Assembly (NCBI GenBank): GCA_002269645.1
Contig: NIVC01002678.1
Span: 86,056-150,055 of the forward strand
Length of the DNA: 64,000 nt
DNA from: Macrostomum lignano
Taxonomy: Eukaryota
Reading direction: 5' to 3'
Of this stretch, positions 7,579 to 44,064 are shown in pieces. How positions within the stretch are numbered: position 1 is the stretch's first letter; the number at the start of each line of letters is the position of its first letter. The notes beneath the pieces were generated by a model. That model was not told where the DNA came from, ran no database searches, and saw only the letters and a program-made list of their open reading frames with translations. The position numbers and the translations under genes are program-made.

Positions 7579-7655
<77 letters not shown>

Positions 7656-10407: not shown

Positions 10408-10439
<32 letters not shown>

Positions 10440-10891: not shown

Positions 10892-10961
<70 letters not shown>

Positions 10962-13783: not shown

Positions 13784-13815
<32 letters not shown>

Positions 13816-14267: not shown

Positions 14268-14350
<83 letters not shown>

Positions 14351-20544: not shown

Positions 20545-21269
20545 GTACGGGCTTGTGAAGCGTAGAATAGATGGCCATTACAGATCTTAGGTCTCTTACG
20601 ATAGGATCGCTGTTGCCGGTGATCTCCTTCGTACGCCTGCCTAGGCTTGAACGCGCCGTGCGGTCTTGAATCCCTGGCTTCGGACGTGCGCTGAATGGGT
20701 AAAAACGGAGTTCGGCTGCCCGCGACGGCTAACATGCTGTCGGCGATTTTGGCGAAGTCTTCTAGCGGAGATTTTTCATGACCGACCAACGCAGAACGGA
20801 TGTGCGTTGGGAGCGCCGTGAGCAGGCGTGACTTGATGATAGACTCGTCGGCTGCTAAACCCACTTCGATGAAGCGGCGCTTAATGTCAGTTACCAATTG
20901 CGAAGGGCGTTTGTCGCCGAGTTCTACTGCTGCAAGGGCTTCCTCGATACGCTGGTGGCGGTTGGCGCGCAGTGAGTCTAGAACAGCTGTTTTGAGTCGG
21001 TTGTATTCGACGATGTCTATGTCGATGTAGCAGGCAACATCCTCCGGGAGAGCGGCCAGTGCGTGGTGGAATTTGGTGCTGGCAGAGCTGATTCCAGCCA
21101 GGGTAAATTGTGATTCGAGTTGGCGGAACCAAATCTCGGGTGCTTGACGGTAGAACGGCGGTGGTCTAATTGTGGCGCGTTGTACCGACGCTACCGGTTC
21201 CGGTATGGCGTTCTCCGAAGAAGCTGCTGGAGTGTCTGATGTAGGTTGTTGACGTTGGGTGTCTTCCAT
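20427..21269 (-). CDS. gag: Gag of element 1
   Basis: The first ATG is at 21269 (MEDTQRQ..; the track starts 10 codons earlier at a GTG). It contains PPPFYRQAPEIWFRQLESQF..TKFHHALAALP, typical of this Gag class, and C-x2-H-x9-C-x3-C (CNGHLFYASQARTCRPWC), the CHCC motif of the CsRn1 clade. Confidence 0.9.
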   Translation of the reverse strand: MEDTQRQQPTSDTPAASSENAIPEPVASVQRATIRPPPFYRQAPEIWFRQLESQFTLAGISSASTKFHHALAALPEDVACYIDIDIVEYNRLKTAVLDSLRANRHQRIEEALAAVELGDKRPSQLVTDIKRRFIEVGLAADESIIKSRLLTALPTHIRSALVGHEKSPLEDFAKIADSMLAVAGSRTPFLPIQRTSEARDSRPHGAFKPRQAYEGDHRQQRSYRKRPKICNGHLFYASQARTCRPWCKWPGPKPTTMLSSRQTTPDHSRANSPTLESASN

Positions 21270-21300
21270 TGTCGTAGTCGTCGAGTGTTGGGATTGCACG

Positions 21301-21311
21301 CTCTGCTACCA
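21301..21311 (-). promoter_or_regulatory. Primer-binding site TGGTAGCAGAG (initiator tRNA-Met-like)
   Basis: An 11-nt complement of the 3' end of metazoan tRNAi-Met (..CUCUGCUACCA), located 3 nt from the LTR. Confidence 0.8.
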
Positions 21312-21314
21312 ATT

Positions 21315-21535
21315 TGTAGCGTTAGGTTACCGCTACAAGCTTACGAGTGTATGTGGCACTTCGAAGATAGCTAGCAAAAGCGGGAGGCTTTTTAGTATAT
21401 TTTGTCATTGCGTTGGGGGCTATTTAGCGCTGGGGCGAACGAATAGTACAGAAGTGTCTATGGGTGAACTAAAGCGATTGGAATATAGAATAAGAAATAA
21501 TTAGAATAAATGATGAATGCTTTGGTGCTGCTACA
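21315..21535 (-). repeat. 5' LTR of element 1
   Basis: TG...CA termini with a 6-bp terminal inverted repeat TGTAGC/GCTACA. The PBS lies 3 nt inside. The PBS-proximal 23 bp forms a 7-bp hairpin (TGTAGCG...CGCTACA). Confidence 0.9.
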
Positions 21536-21595
21536 AGTAATTTTCCAACTCCAAAGTAAATGTAATCTGACAAAACGACTGACATTCTGTTTCAT

Positions 21596-22090
21596 ATTAC
21601 ATGCTACTTCATAGGGCATGCTATTTCTTGACATGCTATTTCATATAACATGCTATTTCATGACATGCTATTTCTTATAAAATGCTACTTCATGACATGC
21701 TATTTCATATAAAATGCTATTTCATGACATGCTATTTCATATAAAATGCTATTTCATGACATGCTATTTAATGACATGCTATTTCATGACATGCTATTTA
21801 ATGACATGCTATTTCATGACATGCTATTTCATATAAAATGCTATTTCATGACATGCTATTTAATGACATGCTATTTCATGACATGCTATTTCATGACGTG
21901 CTTTTTTATGACGTGCTATTTTATGACGTGCTATTTTATGACGTGCTATTTCATGACGTGCTATTTCATATAAACTGCTATTTCATGACATGCTATTTAT
22001 TGACATGCTATTTCATATGACATGCTATTTCATGACATGCTATTTCAAATGACATGCTATTTCATATGACATGCTATTTCATTACATGCT
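21596..22090 (+). repeat. 15-bp satellite (ATGACATGCTATTTC)n; resumes briefly at 26478-26510
   Basis: The period is visible directly and as the 5-aa repeats MLFHD/CYFMT in the ORF track. The same motif continues right of the LTR element that interrupts it. Confidence 0.9.
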
Positions 22091-22216
22091 TGTGGTATCC
22101 CCAGACTAATTGTTCATTTCATTTATCTATGCTTGTACCATAGAGTATTCTATTCTTTATATTACACGCGACCGCCAAGAGAAACTTTATATTGCTTGGC
22201 CACACGAACACCACAT

Positions 22217-22230
22217 TGGTGGCAGCGGTG
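22217..22230 (+). promoter_or_regulatory. Primer-binding site complementary to tRNA-Leu
   Basis: The 14-nt TGGTGGCAGCGGTG is the complement of the 3' end of metazoan tRNA-Leu(AAG/UAG) (..CACCGCUGCCACCA). Confidence 0.85.
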
Positions 22231-22276
22231 AAAAGAGAAAAGCTACGGATGTACTATTGAGAAAATACCTCGCAGG

Positions 22277-25200
22277 ATGGCCTCAGCACAGTTCTACAGC
22301 ATTGGGCATTTCGATCCAGACGAAGATCCGCTCAACAATGCAGATAAGTGGAACGAGTATGTGCAGGAAGTCGAGCTGTTCATGGAAGTGCAAGGAATAG
22401 CCGACGAAAAGAAGCAAGCTACATTCTTGCTTCTAGCAGGGCCGAAAATCCGAAAGCTGTTGCAAACCGTAAGCTATGAACAAGGCTACGAAGCAACGAA
22501 GGAAGCGCTCAGCTCTCTATTCCAAGGTGCAACCAATAGCGTCCATGAGACTTACAAGCTGCTGTCAGTTAGCCAGATAGAGGGAGAAACGTTTGATTCC
22601 TTCTACAGTCGTCTAAAAAGTGCAGCAAAGTACTGCAACTTGCACGTCGAGTACAAGCCTGGAGGAAACGAGAGTACAGTGAAGCTTAGCTTCGAGGATC
22701 GCCTGCTACGCGATCTGATAGTCCTAAAGAGTACATCAAAGCCGCTAAGGACTCTGCTGCTAAAGGAAGGCTCTGACCTCACCTTAAAGAAGGCAGTAGA
22801 AATCAGCAAGAATTTCGAAGCAACAAAAACGCAGGCTAAAGACATTGAAAAACCAACCAATGAGGCGCGCAACACAGTCAGCAAAATCGACAACAGACCA
22901 ACTAACAAGCTACAGTTCAAACAGACTGACAAGCGGACATCAACTCCAAACACCAACAAGTGCGATCGAGTCTGCTACAGATGCAACAGAACAGGTCACC
23001 GTCCCTGGGATTGCTTCGCTCGTAACATGGAATGCAAAGTTTGCCATAAGAAAGGGCACATCAAGCAAGCATGTAGACTATGTCTAAAGACAGGGAGCAG
23101 AATAAAAACCAGAAATATTCAGATATCTGAGCAACCGGAAGAGCAAAATGGCAACGACGAATCGAATGGTGAAGAGATCAACACTGTCGCTATGACTGAA
23201 TCGAAGGAATCAGCAGGCGCAAGAGCCAAAGTGAAGATCAATGGTATTGAGAGTACAGTGCTCATTGACTCCGGATCTTCAGCAAGTTTGATAAGTATGA
23301 AATCGTGGGAGTTAGTGAAGTCAAAGGATACCGTCCTAAACAGATCAGAAAAGCCAAGACTATATGCCTATATGTCGAAAAAGGCGCTGGAAGTCTTGGG
23401 AACAACAACACTGGTTGTGATGGCTGGAGACTCAGTGAAGCGAATCAAATTTATCGTGACGTGCGGTATCAACGCTGAGACAATACTCGGATGTCAAGAC
23501 AGCATCGATTTGAATTTGCTGCAGATAACGATCAATCAGATTGAGAAGAAAAACGAAGAAATCGAACGAATTCTGAAAGATCATCAGGAGGTATTTCAGG
23601 GAGTTGGTAGATTGACCACGCAGCCAGCAGTGACCATTGCTCTGAAGGAAGGAAGCACGCCGACATCACAATCGATAACAAGAGTAGCTGCCCATCTCAG
23701 AGAAGCACTCCTACAAGAACTGGAAGAGCAGGAAAACTCAGGAATCATAGAGAAAGTTGATGGTCCCAGTGCATGGCTTTCGCCGCTAGTTGTCGTCCCA
23801 AAAGGAAAGACTGGTAATGTACGACTGACCGTTGACTTTCGAAACTTAAACGAGGCAACGGAAAAGCTACAATTTCCTATCCCATCTCTGGATGATCAGC
23901 TCACCAATATGGGAGAAGCAAGCTGCTTCAGCTACATTGATGGCAAGAAAATGTTCCATCAAATTGAACTGGACAGTGAATCTAGACATCTGACAACGTT
24001 CTCAACAGGAATCCCTGGACAACCGCTGTACAGGTACAAACGATTGCCGATGGGTTGGGCCAACTCGTCATTCTATCTTCAAGCCTACATGACAAAAGTT
24101 TTGGCTGGTTTACTAGGGCTACTAAAATACTAAATATTTAGGATGATATAATTGTGTATGGAAAGGACGTCATGGAACACAACAACAGGCTAAAGCAGGT
24201 CTTAGCAAGGCTCGTGGAGAACGGCATGACCGTTGGAAAGGAAAAATGCAAATTTGGAATGAGTAAAGCTACTTTTATGGGATTTATTCTAACCGAGAAG
24301 GGAATAACCATCCACGAGAAGAAAACGGAAGCTATTCAAATGTTCAAACCACCGTGCAATCCAAGTGAAGTTAAATCGTTTCTTGGTCTAGCACAATTTG
24401 TTGCTCGATTCGTACCAAACCTAGCAACCTTGTCGAAGCCTCTGAATGACCTCACAAAGAAAGGAAAAACTTGGGAATGGGGTCCAGAACAAGAAAATTC
24501 TTTCAACAGCATCAAAGCAGCGATCAGCTCAACGGAAACGCTCGCGTACTTTGTAACAGGGCGAGAAACTCAGCTGCGAGTAGACGCTAGTCCTGTCGGT
24601 CTTGGTGCGATCTTGGTTCAGAGGCAGAAAGGTGGAAATCTACAGCCAGTTTGCTATGCCAGTAGAACTCTCACAGACGTGGAGACTCGATACAGTCAAA
24701 TCGAGCGAGAAGCATTTGCAATTAAATGGGGATGCGAGAAAATTTCTCACTTTCTCAAAGGAGCAGCCGAATTTACGGTAATAACGGATCATAAACCTCT
24801 ACTCGGATGTTTTGCATCGAACTCAAAACCACCACCAAGAATTGAGCGTTGGGCAATGAGATTGCAGCCATTCAACTTTAAGATAAAATATGAACCAGGC
24901 GACACCAACGAGGCAGATATTTTGTCGAGACAACCGGTGAAAACACCAAACGACACACTCTGCAATTGATGCAACATCGCATTCGTTAACAGCAAACTTG
25001 AAAGCGCAGTAAGCACAGCTCTGAGCTTAAGAGCAGATCCGAAAAGATTCTGCGATTGATGATGAAATTGTCGAGGCACTGGAATCAATAGTATCAGGAG
25101 GAACATGGAAAAAGCACAACAAACTATTTGCAGAAAGAAATAAACTATCGGAGCAGAATGGAATTCTCCTGTACTAAGACCGCATTGTCTTGCCGAAGAG

Positions 25201-26332
25201 TCTGCGACAAAAAGCTCTGTTAATTGCCCATGAAGGACATCAAGGCATTTCCAAAGCCAAAGAACGACTGCGAAGTACCGTATTTTGGCCTGGTATAAGC
25301 AAAGACGTGGAGATCTTTTGCAAGAAATGCAATGTGTGCATCCACACAACGAAAAAAGGAAGTCGGATCCCAATTGTGCCAACGGAAATTCCGGATAAGC
25401 CGTGGGACAAAGTGGCAATGGACTTCAAAGGACCACTTCCGAATGGTAGCAACCTGCTAGTTTTCATCTACTACCACTCGAGATTTCCTCTAGTGTTCAT
25501 CATGAAGCGCACAGAAGCGAGCGACGTAGTGCGAATTCTAAAGAAAGTGATTTCACTATTTGGACCATTGAAAGAACTCGTCTCAGACAACGGAACAAAT
25601 TTCTGTTCGAAAGTCGTTGACGAATACCTTAACAGTCAAGGCGTCATTCACTCTCGGATAATTCCGCGTCACCCAGCAGCAAATGGGGAGGTGGAAAGAT
25701 TCAATGAAACATTGAACAAAGTCATCAGAAGATCCAGAATTTTGAATGGATCAAGTTTTGAAGAGGAATTTCAAATCTTTTTGCACGCCTATAGAACAAC
25801 ACCGATGAGAGCAACAGGCGTAGCGCCAGCAAACCTTTTCTTTCGGTGGAGCGCGCGGACAAAACTTCCTCAAATGAACGACGAGACAATAGATCCTTTG
25901 ATTAAGCAGAAAGATAAAGACGCCGACTACAAAAGAAAAATGTCCAACTACGCTAATCGGAACGCTCGTGACTGCGACATCAAAACAGGTGACACAGTAG
26001 TGATTGAAAGGGAAGCAAGGAACAAGTACGATAGTATTTTTGGTACAGAGCAATACTACGTAAGGAAGCGAGTCGGAGGACTGTTGATCCTGGAGAACAA
26101 AAGTGGCACAATCAAGAAGCGCCACGTTAATAAGGCCAGAAAGATATTCCCAGACTCAGAATCGGACGAGGATCTGGTAACGTTTTCTGGTGGAGGAGGA
26201 ATGAGCGACAGTCAGCGAGAAAAGAGGGACGCATCCGAAATACCACAGTGTGATCCAAGAACAATGCGCAGAAGTGGACTCCGACCACAGACTGTACTGA
26301 GGAGGCCAATTCGTTTCCCTACAATGAACTGA
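22277..26332 (+). pseudogene. gag-pol: Disrupted gag-pol of element 2
   Basis: 22277-24133 has CYRCNRTGHRPWDC and CKVCHKKGHIKQAC knuckles, protease LIDSGSS and RT LTVDFRNLN. The YLDD motif is broken by an indel at ~24121-24146. 24154-24969 carries the RT end and RNase H (VDAS, EREAFA, TDHKP). Further frameshifts and a TAA occur near 24967-25183. 25190-26332 is integrase (HEGHQG..C..C, MDFKGP, SDNG, NGEVERFN). Confidence 0.93.
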
Positions 26333-27191: not shown

Positions 27192-30100
27192 TTCTCAGAC
27201 CTGTGCCGTGAAGTGTCAGTCCTCACTGAGCCTCTCTTCATCTGCTCTCGTGTCTGCCCTCACTGAGCCGCTCTTCATCTGCTCTCGTGTCTGCCCTCAC
27301 TGAGCCGCTCTTCCTCTGCTCTCGTGTCTGCCTTTCTTAGCCGCTCTTCATCTGCTCTCGTGTCTGCCCTCACTGAGCCGCTCTTCATCTGCTCTCGTGT
27401 CTGCCTTTCTTAGCCGCTCTTCATCTGCTCTCGTGTCTGCCTTTCTTAGCCGCTCTTCATCTGCTCTCGTGTCTGCCTTTCTTCGCCGCTCTTCATCTGC
27501 TCTCGTGTCTGCCTTTCTTAGCCGCTCTTCATCTGCTCTCGTGTCTGCCTTCACTGAGCCGCTCTTCATCTGCTCTCGTGTCTGCCCTCACTGAGCCGCT
27601 CTTCATCTGCTCTCGTGTCTGCCCTCACTGAGCCGCTCTTCATCTGCTCTCGTGTCTGCCCTCACTGAGCCGCTCTTCCTCTGCTCTCGTGTCTGCCTTT
27701 CTTAGCCGCTCTTCATCTGCTCTCGTGTCTGCCCTCACTGAGCCTCTCTTCATCTGCTCTCGTGTCTGCCTTTCTTAGCCGCTCTTCATCTGCTCTCGTG
27801 TCTGCCCTCACTGAGCCTCTCTTCATCTGCTCTCGTGTCTGCCTTTCTTAGCCTCTCTTCATCTGCTCTCGTGTCTGCCTTTCTTAGCCGCTCTTCATCT
27901 GCTCTCGTGTCTGCCTTTCTTAGCCGCTCTTCATCTGCTCTCGTGTCTGCCCTCACTGAGCCGCTCTTCATCTGCTCTCGTGTCTGCCTTTCTTAGCCGC
28001 TCTTCATCTGCTCTCGTGTCTGCCCTCACTGAGCCGCTCTTCATCTGCTCTCGTGTCTGCCCTCACTGAGCCGCTCTTCATCTGCTCTCGTGTCTGCCTT
28101 TCTTAGCCGCTCTTCATCTGCTCTCGTGTCTGCCTTTCTTAGCCGCTCTTCATCTGCTCTCGTGTCTGCCTTTCTTAGCCGCTCTTCATCTGCTCTCGTG
28201 TCTGCCTTTCTTAGCCGCTCTTCATCTGCTCTCGTGTCTGCCTTCACTGAGCCGCTCTTCATCTGCTCTCGTGTCTGCCCTCACTGAGCCGCTCTTCATC
28301 TGCTCTCGTGTCTGCCCTCACTGAGCCGCTCTTCATCTGCTCTCGTGTCTGCCCTCACTGAGCCGCTCTTCATCTGCTCTCGTGTCTGCCCTCACTGAGC
28401 CGCTCTTCATCTGCTCTCGTATCTGCCTTTCTGTTCTCAGGCTGTGCCGTGAAGTATCATTCCTCACTGAGCCGCTCTTCATCTGCTCTCGTGTCTGCCC
28501 TCACTGAGCCGCTCTTCATCTGCTCTCGTGTCTGCCCTCACTGAGCCGCTCTTCATCTGCTCTCGTGTCTGCCCTCACTGAGCCGCTCTTCATCTGCTCT
28601 CGTGTCTGCCTTTCTTAGCCGCTCTTCATCTGCTCTCGTGTCTGCCCTCACTGAGCCGCTCTTCATCTGCTCTCGTGTCTGCCCTCACTGAGCCGCTCTT
28701 CATCTGCTCTCATGTCTGCCTTTCTTAGCCGCTCTTCATCTGCTCTCGTGTCTGCCCTCACTGAGCCTCTCTTCATCTGCTCTCGTGTCTGCCTTTCTTA
28801 GCCGCTCTTCATCTGCTCTCGTGTCTGCCCTCACTGAGCCGCTCTTCATCTGCTCTCGTGTCTGCCCTCACTGAGCCGCTCTTCATCTGCTCTCGTGTCT
28901 GCCTTTCTTAGCCGCTCTTCCTCTGCTCTCGTGTCTGCCTTTCTTAGCCGCTCTTCATCTGCTCTCGTGTCTGCCCTCACTGAGCCTCTCTTCATCTGCT
29001 CTCGTGTCTGCCTTTCTTAGCCGCTCTTCATCTGCTCTCGTGTCTGCCCTCACTGAGCCGCTCTTCATCTGCTCTCGTGTCTGCCCTCACTGAGCCGCTC
29101 TTCATCTGCTCTCGTGTCTGCCTTTCTTAGCCGCTCTTCCTCTGCTCTCGTGTCTGCCTTTCTTAGCCGCTCTTCATCTGCTCTCGTGTCTGCCCTCACT
29201 GAGCCTCTCTTCATCTGCTCTCGTGTCTGCCTTTCTTAGCCGCTCTTCATCTGCTCTCGTGTCTGCCCTCACTGAGCCTCTCTTCATCTGCTCTCGTGTC
29301 TGCCTTTCTTAGCCTCTCTTCATCTGCTCTCGTGTCTGCCTTTCTTAGCCGCTCTTCATCTGCTCTCGTGTCTGCCTTTCTTAGCCGCTCTTCATCTGCT
29401 CTCGTGTCTGCCCTCACTGAGCCGCTCTTCATCTGCTCTCGTGTCTGCCTTTCTTAGCCGCTCTTCATCTGCTCTCGTGTCTGCCCTCACTGAGCCGCTC
29501 TTCATCTGCTCTCGTGTCTGCCTTTCTTAGCCGCTCTTCATCTGCTCTCGTGTCTGCCTTTCTTAGCCGCTCTTCATCTGCTCTCGTGTCTGCCTTTCTT
29601 AACCGCTCTTCATCTGCTCTCGTGTCTGCCCTCACTGAGCCGCTCTTCCTCTGCTCTCGTGTCTGCCTTTCTTAGCCGCTCTTCATCTGCTCTCGTGTCT
29701 GCCCTCACTGAGCCGCTCTTCATCTGCTCTCGTGTCTGCCTTTCTTAGCCGCTCTTCATCTGCTCTCGTGTCTGCCCTCACTGAGCCGCTCTTCATCTGC
29801 TCTCGTATCTGCCTTTCTGTTCTCAGGCTGTGCCGTGAAGTATCATTCCTCACTGAGCCGCTCTTCATCTGCTCTCGTGTCTGCCCTCACTAAGCCGCTC
29901 TTCATCTGCTCTCGTGTCTGCCCTCACTGAGCCGCTCTTCCTCTGCTCTCGCGTCTGCCCTCACTAAGCCGCTCTTCATCTGCTCTCGTGTCTGCCCTCA
30001 CTGAGCCGCTCTTCATCTGCTCTCGTGTCTGCCCTCACTGAGCCGCTCTTCATCTGCTCTCGTATCTGCCTTTCTGTTCTCAGGCTGTGCCGTGAAGTAT

Positions 30101-33100
30101 CATTCCTCACTGAGCCGCTCTTCCTCTGCTCTCGTGTCTGCCCTCACTAAGCCGCTCTTCATCTGCTCTCGTGTCTGCCCTCACTGAGCCGCTCTTCATC
30201 TGCTCTCGTATCTGCCTTTCTGTTCTCAGGCTGTGCCGTGAAGTATCAGTCCTCACTGAGCCGCTCTTCCTCTGCTCTCGTGTCTGCCCTCACTGAGCCG
30301 CTCTTCCTCTGCTCTCGTGTCTGCCCTCACTGAGCCGCTCTTCCTCTGCTCTCGTGTCTGCCTTTCTTAGCCGCTCTTCATCTGCTCTCGTGTCTGCCCT
30401 CACTGAGCCGCTCTTCATCTGCTCTCGTGTCTGCCCTCACTGAGCCGCTCTTCATCTGCTCTCGTGTCTGCCTTTCTTAGCCGCTCTTCATCTGCTCTCG
30501 TGTCTGCCTTTCTTAGCCGCTCTTCATCTGCTCTCGTGTCTGCCTTTCTTAGCCGCTCTTCATCTGCTCTCGTGTCTGCCCTCACTGAGCCGCTCTTCAT
30601 CTGCTCTCGTGTCTGCCCTCACTGAGCCGCTCTTCATCTGCTCTCGTGTCTGCCTTTCTTAGCCGCTCTTCCTCTGCTCTCGTGTCTGCCTTTCTTAGCC
30701 GCTCTTCATCTGCTCTCGTGTCTGCCCTCACTGAGCCTCTCTTCATCTGCTCTCGTGTCTGCCTTTCTTAGCCGCTCTTCATCTGCTCTCGTGTCTGCCC
30801 TCACTGAGCCTCTCTTCATCTGCTCTCGTGTCTGCCTTTCTTAGCCTCTCTTCATCTGCTCTCGTGTCTGCCCTCACTGAGCCGCTCTTCATCTGCTCTC
30901 GTGTCTGCCCTCACTGAGCCGCTCTTCATCTGCTCTCGTGTCTGCCCTCACTGAGCCGCTCTTCATCTGCTCTCGTGTCTGCCCTCACTGAGCCGCTCTT
31001 CATCTGCTCTCGTGTCTGCCCTCACTGAGCCGCTCTTCATCTGCTCTCGTGTCTGCCTTTCTTAGCCGCTCTTCCTCTGCTCTCGTGTCTGCCTTTCTTA
31101 GCCGCTCTTCATCTGCTCTCGTGTCTGCCCTCACTGAGCCTCTCTTCATCTGCTCTCGTGTCTGCCTTTCTTAGCCGCTCTTCATCTGCTCTCGTGTCTG
31201 CCCTCACTGAGCCGCTCTTCATCTGCTCTCGTGTCTGCCCTCACTGAGCCGCTCTTCATCTGCTCTCGTGTCTGCCTTTCTTAGCCGCTCTTCCTCTGCT
31301 CTCGTGTCTGCCTTTCTTAGCCGCTCTTCATCTGCTCTCGTGTCTGCCCTCACTGAGCCTCTCTTCATCTGCTCTCGTGTCTGCCTTTCTTAGCCGCTCT
31401 TCATCTGCTCTCGTGTCTGCCCTCACTGAGCCTCTCTTCATCTGCTCTCGTGTCTGCCTTTCTTAGCCTCTCTTCATCTGCTCTCGTGTCTGCCTTTCTT
31501 AGCCGCTCTTCATCTGCTCTCGTGTCTGCCTTTCTTAGCCGCTCTTCATCTGCTCTCGTGTCTGCCCTCACTGAGCCGCTCTTCATCTGCTCTCGTGTCT
31601 GCCTTTCTTAGCCGCTCTTCATCTGCTCTCGTGTCTGCCCTCACTGAGCCGCTCTTCATCTGCTCTCGTGTCTGCCTTTCTTAGCCGCTCTTCATCTGCT
31701 CTCGTGTCTGCCTTTCTTAGCCGCTCTTCATCTGCTCTCGTGTCTGCCTTTCTTAACCGCTCTTCATCTGCTCTCGTGTCTGCCCTCACTGAGCCGCTCT
31801 TCCTCTGCTCTCGTGTCTGCCTTTCTTAGCCGCTCTTCATCTGCTCTCGTGTCTGCCCTCACTGAGCCGCTCTTCATCTGCTCTCGTGTCTGCCTTTCTT
31901 AGCCGCTCTTCATCTGCTCTCGTGTCTGCCCTCACTGAGCCGCTCTTCATCTGCTCTCGTATCTGCCTTTCTGTTCTCAGGCTGTGCCGTGAAGTATCAT
32001 TCCTCACTGAGCCGCTCTTCATCTGCTCTCGTGTCTGCCCTCACTAAGCCGCTCTTCATCTGCTCTCGTGTCTGCCCTCACTGAGCCGCTCTTCCTCTGC
32101 TCTCGCGTCTGCCCTCACTAAGCCGCTCTTCATCTGCTCTCGTGTCTGCCCTCACTGAGCCGCTCTTCATCTGCTCTCGTGTCTGCCCTCACTGAGCCGC
32201 TCTTCATCTGCTCTCGTATCTGCCTTTCTGTTCTCAGGCTGTGCCGTGAAGTATCATTCCTCACTGAGCCGCTCTTCCTCTGCTCTCGTGTCTGCCCTCA
32301 CTAAGCCGCTCTTCATCTGCTCTCGTGTCTGCCCTCACTGAGCCGCTCTTCATCTGCTCTCGTATCTGCCTTTCTGTTCTCAGGCTGTGCCGTGAAGTAT
32401 CAGTCCTCACTGAGCCGCTCTTCCTCTGCTCTCGTGTCTGCCCTCACTGAGCCGCTCTTCCTCTGCTCTCGTGTCTGCCCTCACTGAGCCGCTCTTCCTC
32501 TGCTCTCGTGTCTGCCTTTCTTAGCCGCTCTTCATCTGCTCTCGTGTCTGCCCTCACTGAGCCGCTCTTCATCTGCTCTCGTGTCTGCCCTCACTGAGCC
32601 GCTCTTCATCTGCTCTCGTGTCTGCCTTTCTTAGCCGCTCTTCATCTGCTCTCGTGTCTGCCTTTCTTAGCCGCTCTTCATCTGCTCTCGTGTCTGCCTT
32701 TCTTAGCCGCTCTTCATCTGCTCTCGTGTCTGCCCTCACTGAGCCGCTCTTCATCTGCTCTCGTGTCTGCCCTCACTGAGCCGCTCTTCATCTGCTCTCG
32801 TGTCTGCCTTTCTTAGCCGCTCTTCCTCTGCTCTCGTGTCTGCCTTTCTTAGCCGCTCTTCATCTGCTCTCGTGTCTGCCCTCACTGAGCCTCTCTTCAT
32901 CTGCTCTCGTGTCTGCCTTTCTTAGCCGCTCTTCATCTGCTCTCGTGTCTGCCCTCACTGAGCCTCTCTTCATCTGCTCTCGTGTCTGCCTTTCTTAGCC
33001 TCTCTTCATCTGCTCTCGTGTCTGCCCTCACTGAGCCGCTCTTCATCTGCTCTCGTGTCTGCCCTCACTGAGCCGCTCTTCATCTGCTCTCGTGTCTGCC

Positions 33101-33246
33101 CTCACTGAGCCGCTCTTCATCTGCTCTCGTGTCTGCCCTCACTGAGCCGCTCTTCATCTGCTCTCGTGTCTGCCCTCACTGAGCCGCTCTTCATCTGCTC
33201 TCGTGTCTGCCCTCACTGAGCCGCTCTTCATCTGCTCTCGTGCCTT
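27192..33246 (+). repeat. Satellite of 37-bp (A), 36-bp (B) and 72-bp (C) monomers with a 2154-bp higher-order duplication
   Basis: The core GCCGCTCTTCATCTGCTCTCGTGTCTGCC is followed by CTCACTGA (A) or TTTCTTA (B). C carries GTATCTGCCTTTCTGTTCTCAGGCTGTGCCGTGAAGTATCATTCCTCACTGA. Identical track ORFs are offset by 2154 bp (29247/31401, 29683/31837, 30415/32569). Confidence 0.95.
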
Positions 33247-33416
33247 TGTTGATGCGTCCATAGACATGGCTGGAAATGCGGACTCTTCTTTGTCGGAACT
33301 TTCAATTTCCTCGCAACCGTCTTCAATTGTCAGCCACGTCGTATTTTTGCTTAATGCCCTCTGACAGATTTCTTTTACAGGAGGGAGAATAGTGAGTTCT
33401 AAGAGAGAATAGTTTG

Positions 33417-33586
33417 CTACACCCCGAAAGCAAAGATGAAGAGACCAGCTGCAGTACCAACGCTTGAGCATGCAGCGTAAAGTTGGCCATGTGAGAAGCA
33501 GGGTGACTCCAAGTTGATTCTGGCCAGCGAATTTTTCTTAAGCGACTGTCCCTGGGCTTCATGGTCTGGGCAAACCTTCGGATGGG
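33417..33586 (-). pseudogene. Helitron RepHel/PIF1-like helicase C-terminal remnant
   Basis: Two frames join to give PIRRFAQTM / AQGQSL..INLESPCFSHGQLYAACSSVGTAAGLFIFA. This resembles the known Helitron helicase C-terminus (P(I/V)RLAFAMTINKSQGQSL..GLNLENPCFSHGQLYVACSRVG). There is a frameshift near 33558. Confidence 0.8.
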
Positions 33587-33599
33587 ATGACAGTAAGGA

Positions 33600-34300
33600 T
33601 AGAAAATAAAAAAGAAAGAAGGGCGGGCAGAGAAGGCGGAGAGAAGAGATAAGGAGAGCAGAGGGAAAAGGGAAGTGAGAGGTGAGATGGGGAGAGAAAG
33701 GAACAGAAAAGAGAAAGGAGGGGAGAGAAGAGGGAGAAAGGAGAGCGGGAGGAGAGATGGGGAGAGAGGGGAGAAAGGAGAGAATAGAGAGAAGCAAAAA
33801 GGCGAGAAAGAAAAGATAGAAAAATTAGTGAGGAATAATATAGACGGAAAGGGGAGAGAAATAAACAAAGGAGAGAAGAGGGAAAAGAGAGTACAGAGAA
33901 AGTGGTAGAGGTGGAGAGAGAGGAGAGAAGAGAGAGAAAGAGAGGAGATATGGGGAAAGATTGGAGAAAAAATAGAAAAAAGAGAAAGAGAGGAGATATG
34001 GGGAAAGATTGGAGAAAGAAGAGAAAAGAGAGGAGAAAAGATAGGAGACAAAAAAAGATAAATAAGTGAGAGATGGTACAAAAGAAGAGGGGAGGGTGGA
34101 GAGAAAGGAGAGGAGAGAAAAGGGGAAAGAAGAGAAAGGAAAAAGGGATGAGAGTTGAGATGGGGAGAGAGGGGAGAGAGGGGAGAAAAGTTAGGATAGG
34201 AGAAATTGGAGTGGGAAGAGAATTAGGGGAGAGAGGAGGGGGAGAGGGGAGAAACCGGGAGGGAGAAGCGTGGAGAGAGGAGAGATGAGAGACAGAGGGC
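33600..34300 (+). repeat. Polypurine (GA-rich) low-complexity tract
   Basis: Almost exclusively G/A on the plus strand; it produces spurious L/S/F/P-rich minus-strand ORFs. Confidence 0.88.
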
Positions 34301-35266
34301 TGAAAAAAGACACCAACTTGAGCGGGCCGGAGTTTGCCGACCCCTGCTCCAGAGTCAAGAACTCGATCGGAACCTGTTGGTGCCACTTGCTGGTGTCAAT
34401 GATCTTGTCTGTGGCTTGTTTTCCTTCTGCCGCACTTGCACTGTGCAGAGCTATCTGTGTTGCCTGCTTCCTCTCTGCCATGTGATGTTACTGCGCCAGC
34501 ATAATATGCTTATCTTTTGAGGCATTTAAATTTTAAGACGCCTTTAAGTACAACTAATATGAGTATTACTAGCTCGTATTTCCATTTTGAGTGATTAAAT
34601 TAGTAGGATTGTACCGTATCCCTTCTCATTATTTTTAACATTTTGCAGTGTCTAAGCTGCCCTTTATCTGATGTCGTGTCTGCCTTTCCCTTCTCAGACT
34701 GTGCCGTATGGAATTCAGCTGTATTCAAATCGTAGACTATTAATTATGGATCTAAACGATTATTTGTTGAATATAGATTTTTATATTTGAATCATTCAAT
34801 AGATTCGCAGAAAATAATTTGTTTTTTTGTGACGTGTTAATTGCATAAATTTAGCACATTTAAATCATTTCTTATTCTTTATTTCGAATGAGGTCAGTTT
34901 TGTGTTGACGCGAGCGAAAGTTGAGGGCATTGCTCACCTTGCGATTGACTGAACACAGACATCTGCACAATTTCTCCCACTCCTCATCCCTCTCCTGCCC
35001 CTCCCTCTCCTTCCCATCCCTCTCTCCCATACATTTACTTCTCATTCCACTTCTTCCATCGTCTCCTTCTTTTAAAGCACCTCACGTAATCACCCACCCA
35101 CCTGTTTGAATGATTTTTGCACCTAAAATATTAGTATATTTGTGTGGACATTGCACACTTTCATATTTTCTATCAAAACCCCTCCAGAACCGACTCGAAC
35201 TGATTCAAGAAGCGTCAAAACCAATCGAATTTTACTCCCGTCTGAAGCAACTTGCTAGCTTCGAAA

Positions 35267-38200
35267 ATGCACGCCTGTCTGGCTGCAGTGATCGCAATTG
35301 CATTGCTTGGATTTCAAGTTGAAGCTGCAGAAAAAGACACCAGCAAGACTGTCGATGCCAACGCCCTGGAGCAGTACGGTCCGGCTGTAGACGCGATTGC
35401 AGACGCAATCAGCAACTCAGACAAGAAGACCAAGGACTTGCTGGATGATCTCACGCAATCAACTGACGGTCAAGCCACCCCACTAATCACCAAGGAAATT
35501 CTAAAGAACATGCTAAACGAGCGCTCGGCAAAGACGCAGAAAGCGGGCACTAGATCCATCAGTCTGCAGGCCGAGCAGGGCTTCAACGGATTCTCCAACT
35601 ATCAGCCTTCGGGTTGGGTGATGACGGAGACTGTGGGCGAGCCTGACAAGGTGACGGAAGACGCAGAAGACAAGATGCCCGTCTATGTCTATCCGATGGG
35701 AGTTGGTCCGGTGTTGATGAATGGGTGCACAGGTGCATCCTATCCCAAGACTAGCAAATGCTACTCCAGCAAGGTTCCTGGCAATGGCAATACAATCTGC
35801 ATGAAGCTCCTGGATGCTGCCGCGTACATCGGCGTCGGCTTCGACGGACGAGGATTCTACAAGATCGAGAGCCGCAAAGCCAGTCTGGTGCAACGCTACT
35901 GCTCCAACATGGCTAAATTCCTGGGCAAGGACGTACCCGACACGATGAACGTGTTTGGTATCTTCGAGACCACAGCTGAGACCAAGTCGTTCCGGTCTGC
36001 GGACGAGTACATGAGCTACATCAGGGACAAAGCCGGTCTATCAGAGCAGCGAAATTTGTTCTTGAGCGAGGCTCGCCAGCACGGCACTTCTGAGGCGTCT
36101 GGGTTCAATCTCGGTGCGATAGGTGGAATCGTCGGTGGTGCTATTGGAGCCATAGCGGGTGGGCCTGCGGGAGCGGCCTTGGGAGCGACGCTTGGTGGCG
36201 CGGTGGGTGGCTCAATTTCATCTGGATCAGGAGAAAGCTCTGGCGACTCATCATCAACCACTAGCAGCCAATCGGCCTCAAAAAATTCACAGTATTCCCA
36301 GGCTGCAAGAAAACAAGGTTCTACTGAGGATTTCTTTGCCATCATGTATGTGAGTGTAATCATGTACGAAATTTCACTGGATGATGTGAAGCCCAATGAC
36401 ATCAACTTCGCTGCGCTCAGAGACTACATGAGTCTTCCAGAGTCCTACTTTTCAGTGGGCGCTGCCAGCAAATTTCAAGACTTTCTGCTACGCTGGGGCA
36501 CGCATTTTATCCGGTCTGGAAAGTTCGGCGGTCAGCTAAAAATCACAAAGAGAGCAAAGACAAACAAGTTTGCGTCGTCGGAAGAGTTTGCCAGTCTGGC
36601 TGAGACCGAGTTCCAGTCAATGTTTTCATCGCTGCAGTCAAAGTATTCTCAGCAAACCACTCGTACAGGCTTTTTGGGTTTTGGCGGAAAGAAAACTACT
36701 ACAACGAAATCGAGCAGTGCAAAGTCGGAGAGCCAGTACAGGAGCACAAGAAATGAACGTAATCAAGAGTCGCACAGTTCTAGCGGGTCCGAGTTTACCC
36801 AGACCACCGTCGAGGCTCAGGGAGGAACTCCGGAAATCGCAGAAGCCCTCGTTGACTTTTACACTCCGGCATTCAAGCAGCTGTACCACAGGTGGATCGC
36901 CTCCATCAATGACTATGTGAAGCCGTTCGAGTTCAAGCTGAAGCCCATCGATCAGCTGTTCGACATGAACATGGACGACCTGTTTCCGGCTGGAAACCGC
37001 GACTTTGGCTGTGTTGGAAGTGCGGGGAGCAAAGTGAATATTTTGACAGAGCCCAAAACTCGTCGTCGCTACTACCTCGATGAGGAGACTTACTTTGCTA
37101 ACAATAAGACTAAAACTAAATTGGTTAAGATTTACTGCAAATACAAGAACCAACAAGACTTTCAGAACGCTCTAAAGAGACGAAGACTCTCACTGGAGAA
37201 GGCCGTAGCTGCGTACATGACGGAAGGTCCTTTCCCAACCTCCTCACACGAGTTGAAAGCAGGACAACCCGGTTGCGAGAGCTCTACACTGGCCAAGATC
37301 GACGTGTTCAACTCAAATAACAACACACTGACGTTTCTGCAGCTCAAGAAATCCCCGTTTTTAATAGCTTTCGATCTGCCTCAGGATATTCCGAACTTGT
37401 TGAAATCGCAAGCCAAGTATGTGATGACGTATCTAAAAGACAGGTGGTTTGCGACAGAGCCAGGACACCATCATGCGCACTTGTACGAAGGCTGTCAGCT
37501 CGAAGGCTTCAAGCCAGCTGAGACTAAGATCTGTATCTGGAGCATCATCCTCACCTATGAGGAGGAGACGGGCTTCTTCCATATCGATCCGCTTGACTTT
37601 ATTGCATCAAAGCGCCGCAACCCAAACCTTCCAGACTGGATAGAGGGTACCACGTTTGCTAGGGCTTCTCGGATAGAAGGGCAAAAAGGCGCAAACTCCA
37701 CTGCTGCGGCATCAATTCCGTGCAACGTTCGGTGGTTGAACTCTCACAGACTGGACCCTGATCGGGAAGAAAACTGTCTTTACTTTACGGCTGCGACTGC
37801 TGGAGACATCTTTGTTATATTCGCGTCCATACCAAGAGACCACACAACATGGTACTACCTGCAGATCAATATGGATGGAGTGACATTCTACAAAGCAATG
37901 AAACCGCAAAAGAGAGACTATCAGAAGGGAATGGGGACACTTGGTGACAAGAACCTGTACCAGTCCTACTTCTTGTGTGCGAATCAGGCCAATGGATCAA
38001 TTCTAATGCAGTTCGGTAAGGCGGGCTCGAACAGCGAGATCGGCACTGTCTACTCTGGGTACAAGTTCCGATCGGACAGTCAGTACAGCCGCCTGTCTTT
38101 CTACACATTCGGAGCGGGCTCGAAGTCTGTGTCACTGATGGACATTCACCTCACCAAGGACATGCCGCAAGTGGAGTGTTTGAACAATAACTACAAGATG

Positions 38201-39611
38201 GTTGATGGTCACTGCATCCTGGATTGTCACAAAGAGTGCATTGACTGTAATCTAGCAAAAGATGACACCAGCTGCTTCCAGTGTCGCAATGTGCGCGTTG
38301 AATTGTGGAATTCTATTGGGGGCAGAAGAGTCAGGACAGTGCAGTGCTTGCCAGAGTGTCCGGTTGGCTACCAACTGAGTGACAGCAAGGAAAACCTGTG
38401 CGTGCCCTGCCAACCAGGTACTTTCAAGAACACAACGGGAAATCATAACTGCTTGGCATGCGCTCCTGGATGTTTTTCTGCATCACAAGCGACTGTGAAT
38501 TGCATGCTCTGCAGTCCAGGAAATTTCGCTTCCAAGCCAGGATCGGTACAGTGCCAGCAGTGCCATGTTGGAACAGCGAGCAGTTTTAACGGATCAACTT
38601 CGTGCGGGGCCTGCAGTGCCGGCTTGTTCGCAGCTCAGCGAGGTCAAACGGAGTGCACACCATGTCCAGTCGGACAGTTCAATAAAGCAGAGAGACAGAC
38701 GCAGTGCCAGTTGTGCTCTGCGGGGTTCTTCGCCGACAAGCCAGGTCAGAAATCTTGCAGTGCTTGCCCTGCTGGAACATCGAGTGCTGAGGGCTCAGTG
38801 AGCTGCGCCAACAACTGCAAGAGGGGCGAGTTCAGTCCAGCCGAGGGCATCCCTTGCGCCAAGTGCCCTGCAGGCTCGTTTACTCCCAGCGCGGGATCGG
38901 TAAACTGCACTTCGTGTGCCGAAGGCAGCTATTCCAGTAGCGCTAGGTCAGCGTCTTGCATCCCGTGCCCTGCTGGGAGCTTTGCTGACCAAATATCCTC
39001 AACAAACTGTAGCCAGTGCCCTGCAGGCTCGTTCAGTCCCAGCGCGGGATCGGTAAATTGCACTTTTTGTGCCAAAGGCAGCTATTCCAGTCGCGCCGGA
39101 TCAGCTTCTTGCACCCCGTGTCCCCGGGGATTCTACCAGCCACTGGCAAACCAGACGCACTGTAAGAGCGCCATGCCAGGGTGGTACGTCGACACGGAAG
39201 ACCGTTCGGAGCAGAGAATGTGTCCGCTGGGGAAGTATTCCGGTGCTGCTGCATCAGAATGCACCGTTTGTCCTTCTGGGACCTTTGCTGACCGAGTGGG
39301 CTCAACCAACTGCAGCCAGTGCCCTGCTGGAAGCTGGAGTAACGCTGGCTCTGCATCTTGCCAGCTGTGCAAAGGAGGCTCATTCTCAGTTGGAAACGCT
39401 GCTAACTGCACTCTGTGCCCAGCAGGCACTTTCTCAAACAGCTCAGGCAGCAGCGAGTGCTCGAAATGTCCCGCTGGCACCTACGCCAGCGAATCCGGTT
39501 CCCAAAAATGCGAATATTGTAATTTGTTTTCCCTTAGTCGTCACAGCGGAATGACGCATTGTGACCAATGCCCTGACTCTGGGAGTACCTTTGGCACGGA
39601 TACATGTTACC
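35267..39611 (+). CDS. Exon 1 of a secreted MACPF-domain protein with furin-like and ephrin-receptor-like (GCC2/GCC3-type) cysteine repeats
   Basis: ATG at 35267 starts the signal-peptide-like MHACLAAVIAIALLGFQVEA. MACPF features are YIGVGFDG (35825) and the signature W-G-T-H-F-x6-G-G (WGTHFIRSGKFGG, 36494-36532), ending near KLKPIDQLF (~36960). Furin-like CHKECIDC..C..C and CLPECPVGY follow, then ~22-24 CxxCxxG(T/S)(F/Y) repeats. A canonical donor C|GTAAGT lies at 39611/39612. Confidence 0.9.
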
Positions 39612-39696
39612 GTAAGTAGGAGCGTAATTGCATTTTCAATATTCTGTTTGTTGCTTTTATATGGCCTTTATTATCAATAACTCTAAAATTCTTCAG

Positions 39697-40106
39697 CCAA
39701 TTTGCGCATGAGGTGTTGGATAAGTTTTGGCGAATGTGAAAAAACTATTGATGGCGATTTGGACACATATGGAACAGCAATTATGAGTGACCATGTACCA
39801 AAGGGCGCTGAAATATTCCGGACCTATTTCGGGTACAAACTCGACCGAGTTTCATCTGTGAAAGGGTTTCTAATCTGGCGGAACAAAAAGTCACGCATGT
39901 CATTCAAGAATCTGATGCTGAAACTACTTAATTCTGGTCGGAAAGATATTGTTGACTGTACATTTGAATACGATGTTGATGAAATCGTTACATACCACAA
40001 AACCTGCTCTAGTTCGAATATTAAATATGTGGTAATCATTCAAAGGTATTCGGATTATGAAAGACGAGAAATCAACGTTGCCGAAGTCACATTGTATGCC
40101 AATTAG
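39697..40106 (+). CDS. Predicted exon 2: C-terminal galactose-binding-like (F5/8 type C/discoidin or F-type lectin-like) domain
   Basis: An 85-bp AT-rich GT-AG intron (39612-39696) ends TTCTTCAG. The phase-1 splice joins in frame: ..TCY-P-NLRMRCW. The exon has IDGDLDT near its start and KYVVI..INVAEVTLY at its end, the pattern of galactose-binding-like beta-sandwiches. The splice is predicted, not observed. Confidence 0.75.
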
Positions 40107-42360: not shown

Positions 42361-44064
42361 GTGTTTGTCATCGCTGCGGCTCAAGTGCAATTTGATCCGG
42401 ATACCGACTCCGAACATGAAGAGGAGGAAGGCTGGCTAACAGCGGATGAGGGCGAAGATGAAGAAGAGGAGGACCTGCATCTCCAGCCAAATGAAGACAC
42501 CGAATGCTTGCCAAATGATGATTGGGCGGCACGTGAAGCTGGGCAGGATCAACGGCCAGATGCAGAGCTCGAGTTCTTGGGAATGCCCGGTGTGAATCCT
42601 GACCTGCCGAGACCAGAGACTGCCAATGACGATCCAGCTGCGTTTTTCAATCTGTTTCTGACTGCTGACCTGCTGCAAGAGCTCTGCGCTTGGACCAATG
42701 CGCGGGCGTGGCGCAAATTCGACGAGCTGCAAGCATCGATGCCAAACCTGCCTCAAAGGTTCTCTGCGTGGAAAGACGTGACCGTGGACGAGATGAAGAA
42801 GTTTGTCGCCATGTCGCTTTACATGGGAATAGTTAAAAAGCCCGAGATCGCCAACTATTGGAGCAAATATGATTTCTGCGCAACACCTTTCTTCAAACAA
42901 CTCGCTTGCCTGACAAGGGACAGGCACCAACAGATCAGTAGCCAATTGCGCTTCTATGACTGCAACAACTTCGATGGAAACGACCCGCTAGCAAAGGCAA
43001 GACCATTTATTACTGTTTCTGAGGTCTGTCGCAGTGTGTACATGCCAGAAAAAAGAAATTAGTGTCGGCGAAGAGCTAGTCCTGTTCAGGGGTCGTGTCA
43101 CATTTCGTCAATATATTCCATCCAAGAAAGCGCGATATGGCATAAAACTGTATTGTCTTTGCGAAGCTAGATCCGGTTACGTTAACAACTTCTTAGTACA
43201 CTCTAGTAGAGCTGAGAATGAGCGATTCGGTCAAGGTCTCGGGTGTGGGGGGCTGTCTCTGAGTGAGAAAGTCCTGGTGGAGGCAGTTAGGTACGTATTG
43301 GATTTAGGTTATCACGTCTTCTGCGATAGCTGGTTTGGATCTTATCGGCTTGCGATGTATCTACTGCAGCGGAGCACCTTGCTGATATGCACAGTTCGCG
43401 CCGATCGCGGTGTCCCAGATGGCCTTCGTGGTATTCAGGTCCACCAAGCTCCAAGCTGCACGTTTATGCGCAAAGGAAACGTGCTAGCGTTGAAAATAGT
43501 TGACAGGAAGAGCTCCGGGCTAAAGAAAGTTTACTTCCTTGACACGCAAGGCGTAGCCCAACTTCACCCTGTTCACCAAATCGTGCAAAACGAACTGGTC
43601 ATCCAGCAGAAGCAACAGACAGTTGTATCGTACAACAAATTTATGGGTGGTGTCGACAGGCTTGACTCTGCCTTGCAGCCATACAACCCATGCCAGCGGA
43701 CTCAGAAGTGGCCCACAAAGCTCGGAGCGCACCTTTTTCTTGTACATGCCAGAAACGGCTGGGTTGTGTACCGATCATTCGGAGGTACACAGGAGTTTTT
43801 GAAGTTTTTGGATAAAGTTCATCAAGAACTTTATCAACTCCTCTGGACCAGGTCGTGTAAGAGCTGGTCGAGCACAGCAGCAGCCAGCAGTGGCTTACCA
43901 ACAGCACTCGCTAAAGCGCATTAAAGCCACCGAAGCGCAAGCCCGACCAACGAAGCGGCGCAGGCAGTGCTACAGAAACTGTCTTCTGCTGCGGCTTATG
44001 TGAAGGAAACCCTGGACTGTGCGCAGCCCCCTGTTTTGCTGACTGGCATGCCGCACAGTTGTAA
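42361..44064 (+). pseudogene. piggyBac-like (PGBD4-type, DDE_Tnp_1_7) transposase, frameshifted
   Basis: Acidic N-terminus, then FFNLFLTADLL..WTNARA, WKDVTVDEMKKF and YWSK. After a frameshift near 43040 come ISVGEELVLFRGR..RQYIPSKKARYGIK, FCDSWF and YNKFMGGVDRLD. The cysteine-rich tail TVFCCGLC..PGLC..PCF..WH is in another frame and ends TAA at 44064. No TTAA-bounded TIRs were identified. Confidence 0.92.

Follow-up and report, generated by a model that had tools for sequence, protein, structure and literature searches.

We analysed a 64,000-nt stretch of the genome of the free-living flatworm Macrostomum lignano (assembly GCA_002269645.1, contig NIVC01002678.1, positions 86,056 to 150,055 of the forward strand; hereafter the window, numbered from its first nucleotide) and found on its plus strand a gene for a MACPF protein that carries a hydrophobic, glycine-rich segment of 38 residues, GFNLGAIGGIVGGAIGAIAGGPAGAALGATLGGAVGGS, in the first of its two transmembrane hairpin (TMH) regions. 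The glycines of this segment recur with a period of four, and the segment is under purifying selection. The initial annotation of this DNA had singled out the same residues, and translation of 36101–36214 (+) reproduces them exactly as residues 279–316 (residues are counted throughout from the ATG at window position 35267). We refer to the segment as the glycine zipper, on the basis of its translation, the spacing of its glycines and sub-threshold matches to Pfam glycine-zipper families. In our leading explanation, to which we give a probability of roughly 0.45, the zipper would form an alpha-helical hairpin that inserts into the target bilayer and packs by its glycine face in a ring, with the polar arms on either side of it forming a barrel above.

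The domain proved to be a genuine MACPF domain, and profile, signature and fold all place the window protein in the MACPF superfamily. The Pfam MACPF profile (PF01823) scored 55.4 bits against a cut-off of 21.5 over residues 341–571 (here in the numbering of the listed open reading frame, ORF); from Pfam, the modelled core and the fold search, the whole domain covers about residues 149–572 (35711–36982, +). The signature (Y/W)-G-(T/S)-H-(F/Y)-x6-G-G is present as WGTHFIRSGKFGG (WGTHF-x6-GG; residues 410–422; 36494–36532, +), located by homologue alignment at the start of strand 3, with G411, H413, F420, G421 and G422 invariant across 21 homologues. Sequence searches of the PDB gave marginal matches with the single sequence and, with a profile, C8 alpha at ∼1e-3 and otherwise the Cys-rich repeats alone, and we therefore used a fold search to place the MACPF relatives. 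The AlphaFold model used for this purpose covers residues 120–600 and was built from a 51-sequence alignment (core predicted local distance difference test score, pLDDT, of 70–90; predicted template modelling score of 0.55), with strand boundaries of moderate confidence. An earlier run on 711 residues with a 21-sequence alignment (pLDDT 40.9) is usable for the order of secondary structures alone. All 49 Foldseek matches of the 120–600 model in the PDB at E ≤ 0.001 were MACPF structures, each with a probability of 1.00, and included GNIP1Aa (3e-12), Mpf2Ba1, Plu-MACPF, TgPLP1, perforin, C9, C6 and C8, as well as MPEG1, pleurotolysin B and astrotactin-2.

In the model, core strand 1 (residues 227–242, ending in DTMNVFGIFETTAETKSF; 35945–35992, +; model positions 108–123), with its nearly invariant VPDxM, is followed by two CH1-type helices, a disordered stretch that holds the zipper, strand 2 (FFAIMYVSVIMYEISL; 36332–36379, +; model positions 235–252, that is, residues 354–371), with a nearly invariant YEI, and a helix-turn-helix. 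The second half comprises strand 3 (residues 413–432), opening at the WGTHF-x6-GG signature, then a helix, disorder and strand 4 (TTVEAQGG; 36803–36826, +; residues 512–518 in the model, model positions 393–399), whose GG is invariant or nearly so. This modelled order matches the canonical MACPF topology, in which strands 1 and 2 enclose TMH1, and strands 3 and 4 enclose TMH2. The model thus puts the insert inside TMH1, between core strands 1 and 2 and past the two CH1-type helices, where the initial annotation had supposed it to be.

TMH1 spans residues 243–355 (35993–36331, +) and consists of a 36-residue polar N-arm with the two helices, the 38-residue zipper and a 39-residue Ser/Thr-rich C-arm. 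TMH2 (residues 433–512; 36563–36802, +) has a 35-residue N-arm, the tip GFLGFGG (residues 468–474; 36668–36688, +; read from the sequence) and a 38-residue C-arm; the tip reads FLGFG or FLGLG in the paralogs and in the metagenomic homologue P0022 (P numbers are our handles for database proteins). The Ser/Thr-rich polar arms bordering the insert and the short TMH2 tip are as first described, and the sizes given at that time, ∼105 residues for TMH1 and ∼85 for TMH2, compare with about 111–113 and 79–80 in the model. The arms of the two regions agree within one residue (36/39 in TMH1, 35/38 in TMH2). With arms so closely matched, refolding of both regions into beta-hairpins would leave the zipper in place of the turn of TMH1, at the same height as GFLGFGG at the tip of TMH2. 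Ser, Thr, Gln and charged residues make the arms polar throughout, and hydrophobic residues do not alternate along them, which leaves the zipper and the TMH2 tip as the sole membrane-compatible parts of the two regions.

Measured between the same anchors, the TMH1 segment is 154 residues long in the zipper-bearing proteins (the window protein and the paralogs P0003, P0004 and P0005), 123 in the zipperless paralog P0002, 121 in most of the amphioxus proteins, which are likewise zipperless, 119 in Lingula and 126 in Owenia. The corresponding TMH2 segment measures 141 residues in the zipper-bearing proteins and in P0002, and 137 in most amphioxus proteins. Hence the lengthening is confined to TMH1, roughly by the size of the insert.

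The internal pattern of the zipper would suit a two-armed helical module. Glycine accounts for 15 of its 38 residues and none is charged; two ladders, G8-G12-G16-G20 in arm 1 and G24-G28-G32-G36 in arm 2, flank the turn G20-G21-P22, in line with a design of two (G/A/S)xxxGxxxG ladders and a central turn within about 40–45 residues. There are 11 GxxxG (i+4) pairs where 5.1 are expected (p = 5e-5; 200,000 shuffles of the same composition). Glycine pairs at i+8 number nine, those at i+2 and i+6 zero, and the spectrum of hydrophobicity has its maximum at 90 degrees.

Refolding from helices into beta-hairpins is well established for MACPF/CDC TMH regions, and the zipper could accordingly add ∼19 residues to each strand of TMH1 as an extra-long, or double-depth, Gly-rich beta structure. 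Its composition, rich in Gly, Ala, Val and Ile, is beta-prone, the central GGP could be a beta-turn, and the TMH regions of this family are already unusually long at ∼80 residues. We nevertheless consider this extension unlikely. TMH2 is not longer in the zipper-bearing proteins (141 versus 137–141 residues), so the zipper has no TMH2 partner, and the added strands no neighbours, to continue a closed barrel. The zipper also lacks the period-2 alternation of polar and apolar residues and i+2 glycine pairs, and both of its faces would be apolar if it were a strand, which is unfavourable to a water-filled lumen. Furthermore, the tip that replaces the zipper in P0002, SVSATISAFSISS, has more power at the beta-type periodicity than the zipper itself, which is weak evidence in the same direction. 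On balance we prefer the helical tip hairpin to a longer beta-hairpin, because of the period-4 glycines, the missing polar/apolar alternation and the symmetric arms of 16–20 residues around GGP, and also because the zipper is located at the tip of the hairpin, has no TMH2 partner and is marginally hydrophobic, as described below.

The zipper is conserved in length and residues wherever it could be compared in full. All five zippers compared (window protein, P0003, P0004, P0005 and P0022) have 38 residues and agree at 15 positions (11 Gly, 3 Ala and 1 Leu), at an overall protein identity down to 41%; the window protein, P0003, P0004 and P0022 have no charged zipper residue and P0005 has three. 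At the codon level we compared three sequences, namely the window, the genomic P0003 locus and the P0004 contig, for which the synonymous sites are saturated, so that only the contrast in the proportion of nonsynonymous differences (pN) is meaningful. This proportion was 0.13–0.23 in the zipper (synonymous proportion, pS, 0.70–0.87, saturated), 0.09–0.16 in the MACPF core (pS 0.60–0.83) and 0.46–0.51 in the Ser-rich C-arm beside the zipper (pS 0.62–0.86). The zipper is thus under purifying selection, with a constraint like that of the MACPF core, and the arm beside it is far freer. Homologues that bear the segment therefore do not vary it freely.

These data bear directly on whether the zipper is a functionless Gly-rich filler that arose by replication slippage, as its Ser-rich low-complexity neighbour, a weak 12-bp × 2.2 repeat in its second arm and its two losses might suggest. 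We regard such neutral expansion as highly improbable: pN in the zipper is at the level of the MACPF core and 2–4 times below that of the neighbouring arm, length and 15 positions are fixed across proteins that are 41–58% identical overall, and the period-4 pattern is non-random (p = 5e-5). An artefact of tandem-repeat or low-complexity DNA was likewise ruled out, since Tandem Repeats Finder reported only the weak repeat in the second arm (score 38) and nothing else, and the paralogs spell the same zipper residues with different codons.

The zipper might also have no role at a membrane, serving instead as a flexible or self-associating element for oligomerisation or condensation in a non-lytic MACPF protein of recognition, adhesion or signalling. 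Polar TMH arms, together with short tips in the zipperless members, cast doubt on a classical transmembrane barrel in this family, the protein carries many binding modules (Ephrin_rec_like repeats and a discoidin-like end), and astrotactins and BRINPs are known non-lytic MACPF proteins. Such a role appears improbable to us, given that neither the WGTHF-x6-GG signature nor the hinge glycines vary, that the nearest fold matches include proven pore formers, and that the zipper keeps aliphatic, never charged, residues at its conserved non-glycine positions, where a flexible linker would accept polar changes.

Under the helical-hairpin explanation, the gene would encode a secreted MACPF protein of the pore-forming type, and one clade of its family would have swapped the TMH1 turn for a 38-residue module in which a Gly-Gly-Pro turn connects two hydrophobic GxxxGxxxGxxxG arms, as in bacterial glycine zipper 2TM domains. 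The marginal hydrophobicity of the module would let the protein be secreted in soluble form; at the target membrane the module would enter the bilayer, and the glycine faces of adjacent hairpins would pack laterally in the ring oligomer. Above the module, the long polar TMH arms (35–39 residues per strand) would build an extramembranous beta-barrel stalk, with the aromatic GFLGFGG tip of TMH2 lying at the membrane interface. Helical conformation, membrane insertion, packing of helices in a ring and pore formation are thus what we infer from the sequence and location of the zipper.

Hydrophobicity also helps to weigh a different use of a membrane hairpin. On the Hessa scale, the best 19-mer of the zipper sums to +3.5 to +4.4 kcal/mol, and such marginal hydrophobicity would be expected of a segment that the translocon lets through and that enters a membrane afterwards. 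The hairpin could instead be a tether or storage device that anchors the protein in a granule or surface membrane of the producing cell, or keeps it inactive or aggregated before release. Perforin-2/MPEG1 is a precedent for a membrane-tethered MACPF protein; both flanks of the hairpin would be luminal, which is compatible with a secretory protein, and zipper-bearing and zipperless paralogs coexist, as expected if their localisation differed. The same energy sum, however, argues against co-translational integration by the translocon, and a tether could be placed anywhere, whereas a position at the hairpin tip, level with the tip of TMH2, is what insertion into a target would need. We therefore give a tether little credence.

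Several observations weigh against a helical hairpin at the barrel tip. The zipper has a pLDDT of 21–28 and no helix in the better AlphaFold model, and the poor model shows short, low-confidence helices alone. Sequences rich in Gly, Ala, Ile and Val also form beta structure, and an i+4 spacing marks one face of a strand as well. Arms of 16–20 residues are at the short end for a helix that spans a bilayer. The zipperless P0002 and P0032 indicate that the zipper is dispensable for some function of the family; the glycine-zipper Pfam matches are sub-threshold and of low complexity, pointing to a likeness in design and not to homology. Finally, pore formation is presumed for this subfamily, and some MACPF proteins are non-lytic.

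A bolder form of the helical-hairpin explanation, which we put forward only tentatively and think rather doubtful, is that the zipper defines a third architecture of membrane insertion among MACPF/CDC proteins: a polar beta-barrel stalk outside the membrane and a transmembrane ring of zipper hairpins, one per subunit. The glycine faces would then pack as in SlyB-type rings and the aromatic TMH2 tips would form an interfacial girdle; zipper-bearing and zipperless paralogs might even co-assemble, like complement components.

The textbook example of membrane insertion by refolding of helices into beta-hairpins is provided by the MACPF/CDC proteins. If the tip of TMH1 is indeed a helical zipper, the superfamily can combine beta-barrel and helical-hairpin insertion. 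Together with P0002 (61% identity), the window gene offers a natural pair with and without the zipper for studying the role of the hairpin tip at first membrane contact and for dissecting the conversion from prepore to pore, and since M. lignano is a laboratory model, the question is directly testable. The data also point to a whole metazoan subfamily of MACPF proteins, so far uncharacterised, whose polar TMH regions are unusually long.

A search of the literature returned no paper that pairs MACPF with glycine zipper, GxxxG or Ephrin_rec_like and none that names the Mlig locus tags, and in the literature searched we found no earlier description of a MACPF protein with what appears to be a glycine-zipper hairpin as its TMH tip. 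With the MACPF/CDC pore formers (perforin, C9/C8, MPEG1, Plu-MACPF, GNIP1Aa, Mpf2Ba1 and pleurotolysin B) the window protein shares fold, profile, signature and two helical or disordered TMH regions between strands 1–2 and 3–4. It differs from them in its very low sequence similarity (best PDB E ∼1e-3, C8 alpha), polar arms, the 38-residue zipper in place of the TMH1 turn and another C-terminal architecture. Perforin and C9 have TMH regions of roughly 55–60 residues, which those of the whole family (∼80 residues) exceed.

Membership in MPEG1/perforin-2 was rejected, as no profile match to the PDB chains of MPEG1 was obtained and the Foldseek likeness is at the level of the general MACPF fold. 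MPEG1/perforin-2 has a P2 domain and a C-terminal transmembrane helix, where the window protein has a middle domain, Ephrin_rec_like repeats and a discoidin-like domain. M. lignano is reported to have 13 MPEG1 genes (PMC10781884).

The closest likeness of the zipper itself is to the bacterial glycine zipper 2TM, YMGG and Omp domains (PF05433, PF13441 and PF13488), which have ∼40 residues in two GxxxG arms with a turn and, as here, consist of aliphatic residues and glycine. These glycine-zipper families are the sole Pfam families that touch the zipper, and they do so end to end (profile positions 7–44 of 45). All scores fell below threshold (20.1 bits versus 28.9 for YMGG, 15.8 versus 25 and 12.2 versus 24.2), with the paralog zippers lower still, and membership in these families was rejected: the zipper works like a glycine zipper 2TM domain but is not a member of the family. 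The host, too, is different, being eukaryotic, with the module inside a MACPF TMH region and not joined to a lipoprotein. A PDB sequence search aligned the zipper with the glycine-zipper region of the Escherichia coli lipoprotein SlyB. According to the passage of PMC12408116 that cites Janssens et al. 2024, the glycine-zipper domains of SlyB oligomerise into ring-shaped transmembrane assemblies of 11–13 subunits, a geometry that would be compatible with a MACPF ring.

Glycine zippers are also needed for membrane insertion, translocation or depolarisation by several bacterial toxins (PMC10240207, PMC12744356, PMC5380434, PMC11630599); in those of the first three sources they drive insertion or permeabilisation. 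The toxins compared, namely the N-terminus of the type VI secretion effector Tde1, the type VII effectors TelE and EsxX, Caulobacter CdzC/CdzD and ionophoric CdiA-CT, share tandem GxxxG motifs with the window protein; they are small, lone bacterial effectors, whereas the window protein is large, eukaryotic and of the ring-forming type and contains the zipper as a sub-module. Among the matches listed from a search of 1.84 billion proteins, P0152, a 782-residue protein from a Verrucomicrobia metagenome-assembled genome (MAG), aligned with the query by way of the zipper (E = 3.2e-9) and contains three helix-GGPAG-helix hairpins of the zipper design, for example GGAIGGAIGAVTGGPAGAAAGAAIGG. It is bacterial, has no Pfam MACPF match and weakly matches DUF6861 and glycine-zipper Pfam families, so that the likeness is limited to the zipper. 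Acquisition of the zipper from bacteria was discarded on these grounds, since nothing was found beyond a sub-threshold likeness in design and the P0152 match.

The closest database proteins are hypothetical proteins of M. lignano itself: P0001 (95% identity), P0002 (61%) and P0003, P0004 and P0005 (57–58%). They are followed by uncharacterised amphioxus, Lingula and Owenia proteins at 32–36% identity over most of the length. When 1.84 billion representative proteins were scanned exhaustively with HMMER, only 278 relatives were found at E ≤ 1e-3, and the family that combines MACPF with Ephrin_rec_like repeats is small and unstudied. Its members from amphioxus (Branchiostoma), Lingula, Owenia and Glandiceps match with 62–97% query coverage and E = 3e-173 to 8e-142, with conserved columns that run through residues 575–960. 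They share the MACPF core, the middle domain, the length of TMH2 and, in many cases, the Cys-rich repeats; by these similarities, the window protein is a member of this unnamed amphioxus/Lingula/Owenia-type subfamily. The amphioxus-type relatives differ in having no zipper: their TMH1 is ∼33 residues shorter and has a Gly/aromatic tip of 14–16 residues, GGGAFGLGWSAGGG. The TMH regions of the zipperless amphioxus proteins are ∼80 residues long and mostly polar, with SSSWFHKHE as the tip of TMH2. Such long polar TMH regions with Gly/aromatic tips are unusual among MACPF proteins.

Four paralog lineages of Macrostomum carry the zipper, namely the pair formed by the window protein and P0001, and P0003, P0004 and P0005. 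Further carriers are P0022 from Tara Oceans and other marine metagenomes (41% identity), whose zipper has no Pro, and P0101, a 113-residue marine-metagenome fragment with strand 1 and a GGP-centred zipper. In the rest of the family, that is, the close paralog P0002, the environmental P0032 and all amphioxus, Lingula and Owenia homologues, the zipper is absent; P0032 retains LGPIGG, which resembles the opening residues of the zipper. Across P0006–P0058 and the paralogs, the inter-anchor length of TMH1 falls into three classes of 113–115 residues (with zipper), 68–103 (mostly 76–94) and 37–41.

A neighbour-joining tree of core columns, with both TMH regions left out, paired zipperless P0032 with zipper-bearing P0022 (99%), zipperless P0002 with the window protein (98.5%), and P0004 with the group of P0003 and P0005 (99%, all three with zipper); the latter two groups joined at 100% and all seven proteins at 96.5%. 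By event counting, one gain with two losses and repeated gains are equal, at three events each. Because the carriers have the length, position and non-glycine residues of the zipper in common, we prefer a single gain, with probable losses in P0002 and P0032. With this distribution the zipper appears to be a lineage-specific insert with secondary losses, and not a family-wide feature.

The window gene is 94.8% identical in DNA over 4.5 kb to a locus on contig NIVC01004190.1 of the same assembly (L007, 2924–7258), of which it appears to be a paralogous or homeologous copy. The zipper of that copy is identical to the window's at 37 of 38 residues. An in-frame stop lies within its Ser-rich TMH1 C-arm, which explains why P0001, its NCBI gene model, begins only past the zipper; the copy is either pseudogenised or affected by a sequence error. 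On the P0004 contig the ORF is complete and intronless and extends through the discoidin-like end, which suggests a spliced transcript; a zipper-bearing paralog is therefore probably expressed. P0027 (MEE4248891.1; 405 residues), annotated as a protein of a Kangiellaceae bacterium MAG and located on a 1250-bp contig, is 55% identical to residues 415–710; this contig is probably eukaryotic and was mis-binned into a bacterial MAG.

The zipper lies in an ORF of 1455 codons at 35252–39619 (+), according to the ORF listing. This ORF opens with TTG at 35252, although the likely start codon is the ATG at 35267. We propose that the MACPF gene is intact, has at least two exons at 35267–40106 (+) and encodes a secreted-type product of ∼1584 residues, because intron signals are followed by an in-frame continuation that aligns with a paralog C-terminus. 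Exon 1 (35267–39611, +) would encode residues 1–1449 of 1584, as supported by the ORF listing, Pfam and homologues. The stop codon of the ORF, at 39617–39619, falls within a putative 85-nt intron (39612–39696, +; GTAAGT…TTCAG), with a consensus donor GTAAGT from 39612 and an acceptor TTCAG that ends at 39696. The putative exon 2 (39697–40106, +), placed by paralog alignment, would be joined in frame and encode a discoidin (F5/8 type C)-like C-terminal domain ending in INVAEVTLYAN. Its product (∼135 residues) aligns end to end with the C-terminus of P0002 (E = 8e-7), which in turn weakly matches the Pfam family F5_F8_type_C.

The domain order is thus MACPF, a conserved middle domain, 11 Ephrin_rec_like repeats and the discoidin-like end. 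A signal-peptide-like N-terminus, MHACLAAVIAIALLGFQVEA, can be read from the sequence at 35267–35326 (+), and equivalent hydrophobic N-termini are present in the paralogs. The domain after MACPF (about residues 575–965; 36989–38161, +), delimited by conserved columns in the homologue alignment, has ∼390 residues and is kept from flatworm to amphioxus, Lingula and Owenia, with motifs such as PC..W.N..R.DP and FTAA..GDIFV.FA.IP...TWYY. Searches of this domain gave no Pfam match and no PDB sequence match, and a Pfam search of the N-terminal region was likewise empty; the domain may serve in target binding. The Cys-rich Ephrin_rec_like/TNFR-like repeats follow at 38177–39611 (+) as 11 Pfam stretches, over which a PDB search with the family profile matched the mastigoneme protein Mst1 and ELAPOR1.

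The surroundings of the gene in the window are rich in repeats. Positions 1–16585 form a macro-tandem repeat built of units of about 3.3 kb, where 6194–13260 and 9467–16585 are 96% identical and older copies 81–90%; within it are ORFs of 387–399 residues, none matched by Pfam, and minisatellites of 30/80 bp. Two Ty3/gypsy-type retroelement pol regions follow at 17329–26332, separated by a 15/32-bp minisatellite (21580–22090). The one on the minus strand has an uninterrupted ORF of 1071 residues (protease, reverse transcriptase, RNase H and integrase) with a DUF7041 ORF upstream, and the one on the plus strand has three separate ORFs (reverse transcriptase; RNase H; integrase). Just upstream of the MACPF gene lies a 6-kb satellite with a 37/73-bp unit in 165 copies (27213–33242), and directly upstream is CT-rich low-complexity DNA (33300–34500) with spurious long ORFs, rich in Ser/Leu/Phe/Pro on the minus strand and Arg/Glu/Gly/Lys on the plus strand. 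Downstream, an ORF of 296 residues at 43034–43924 aligns with a piggyBac-type transposase (DDE_Tnp_1_7, E = 2.5e-31) over the C-terminal two thirds of the latter and is probably a truncated transposon copy. A second satellite, with a 22-bp unit in 833 copies (96% matches), extends from 45731 to the end of the window at 64000.

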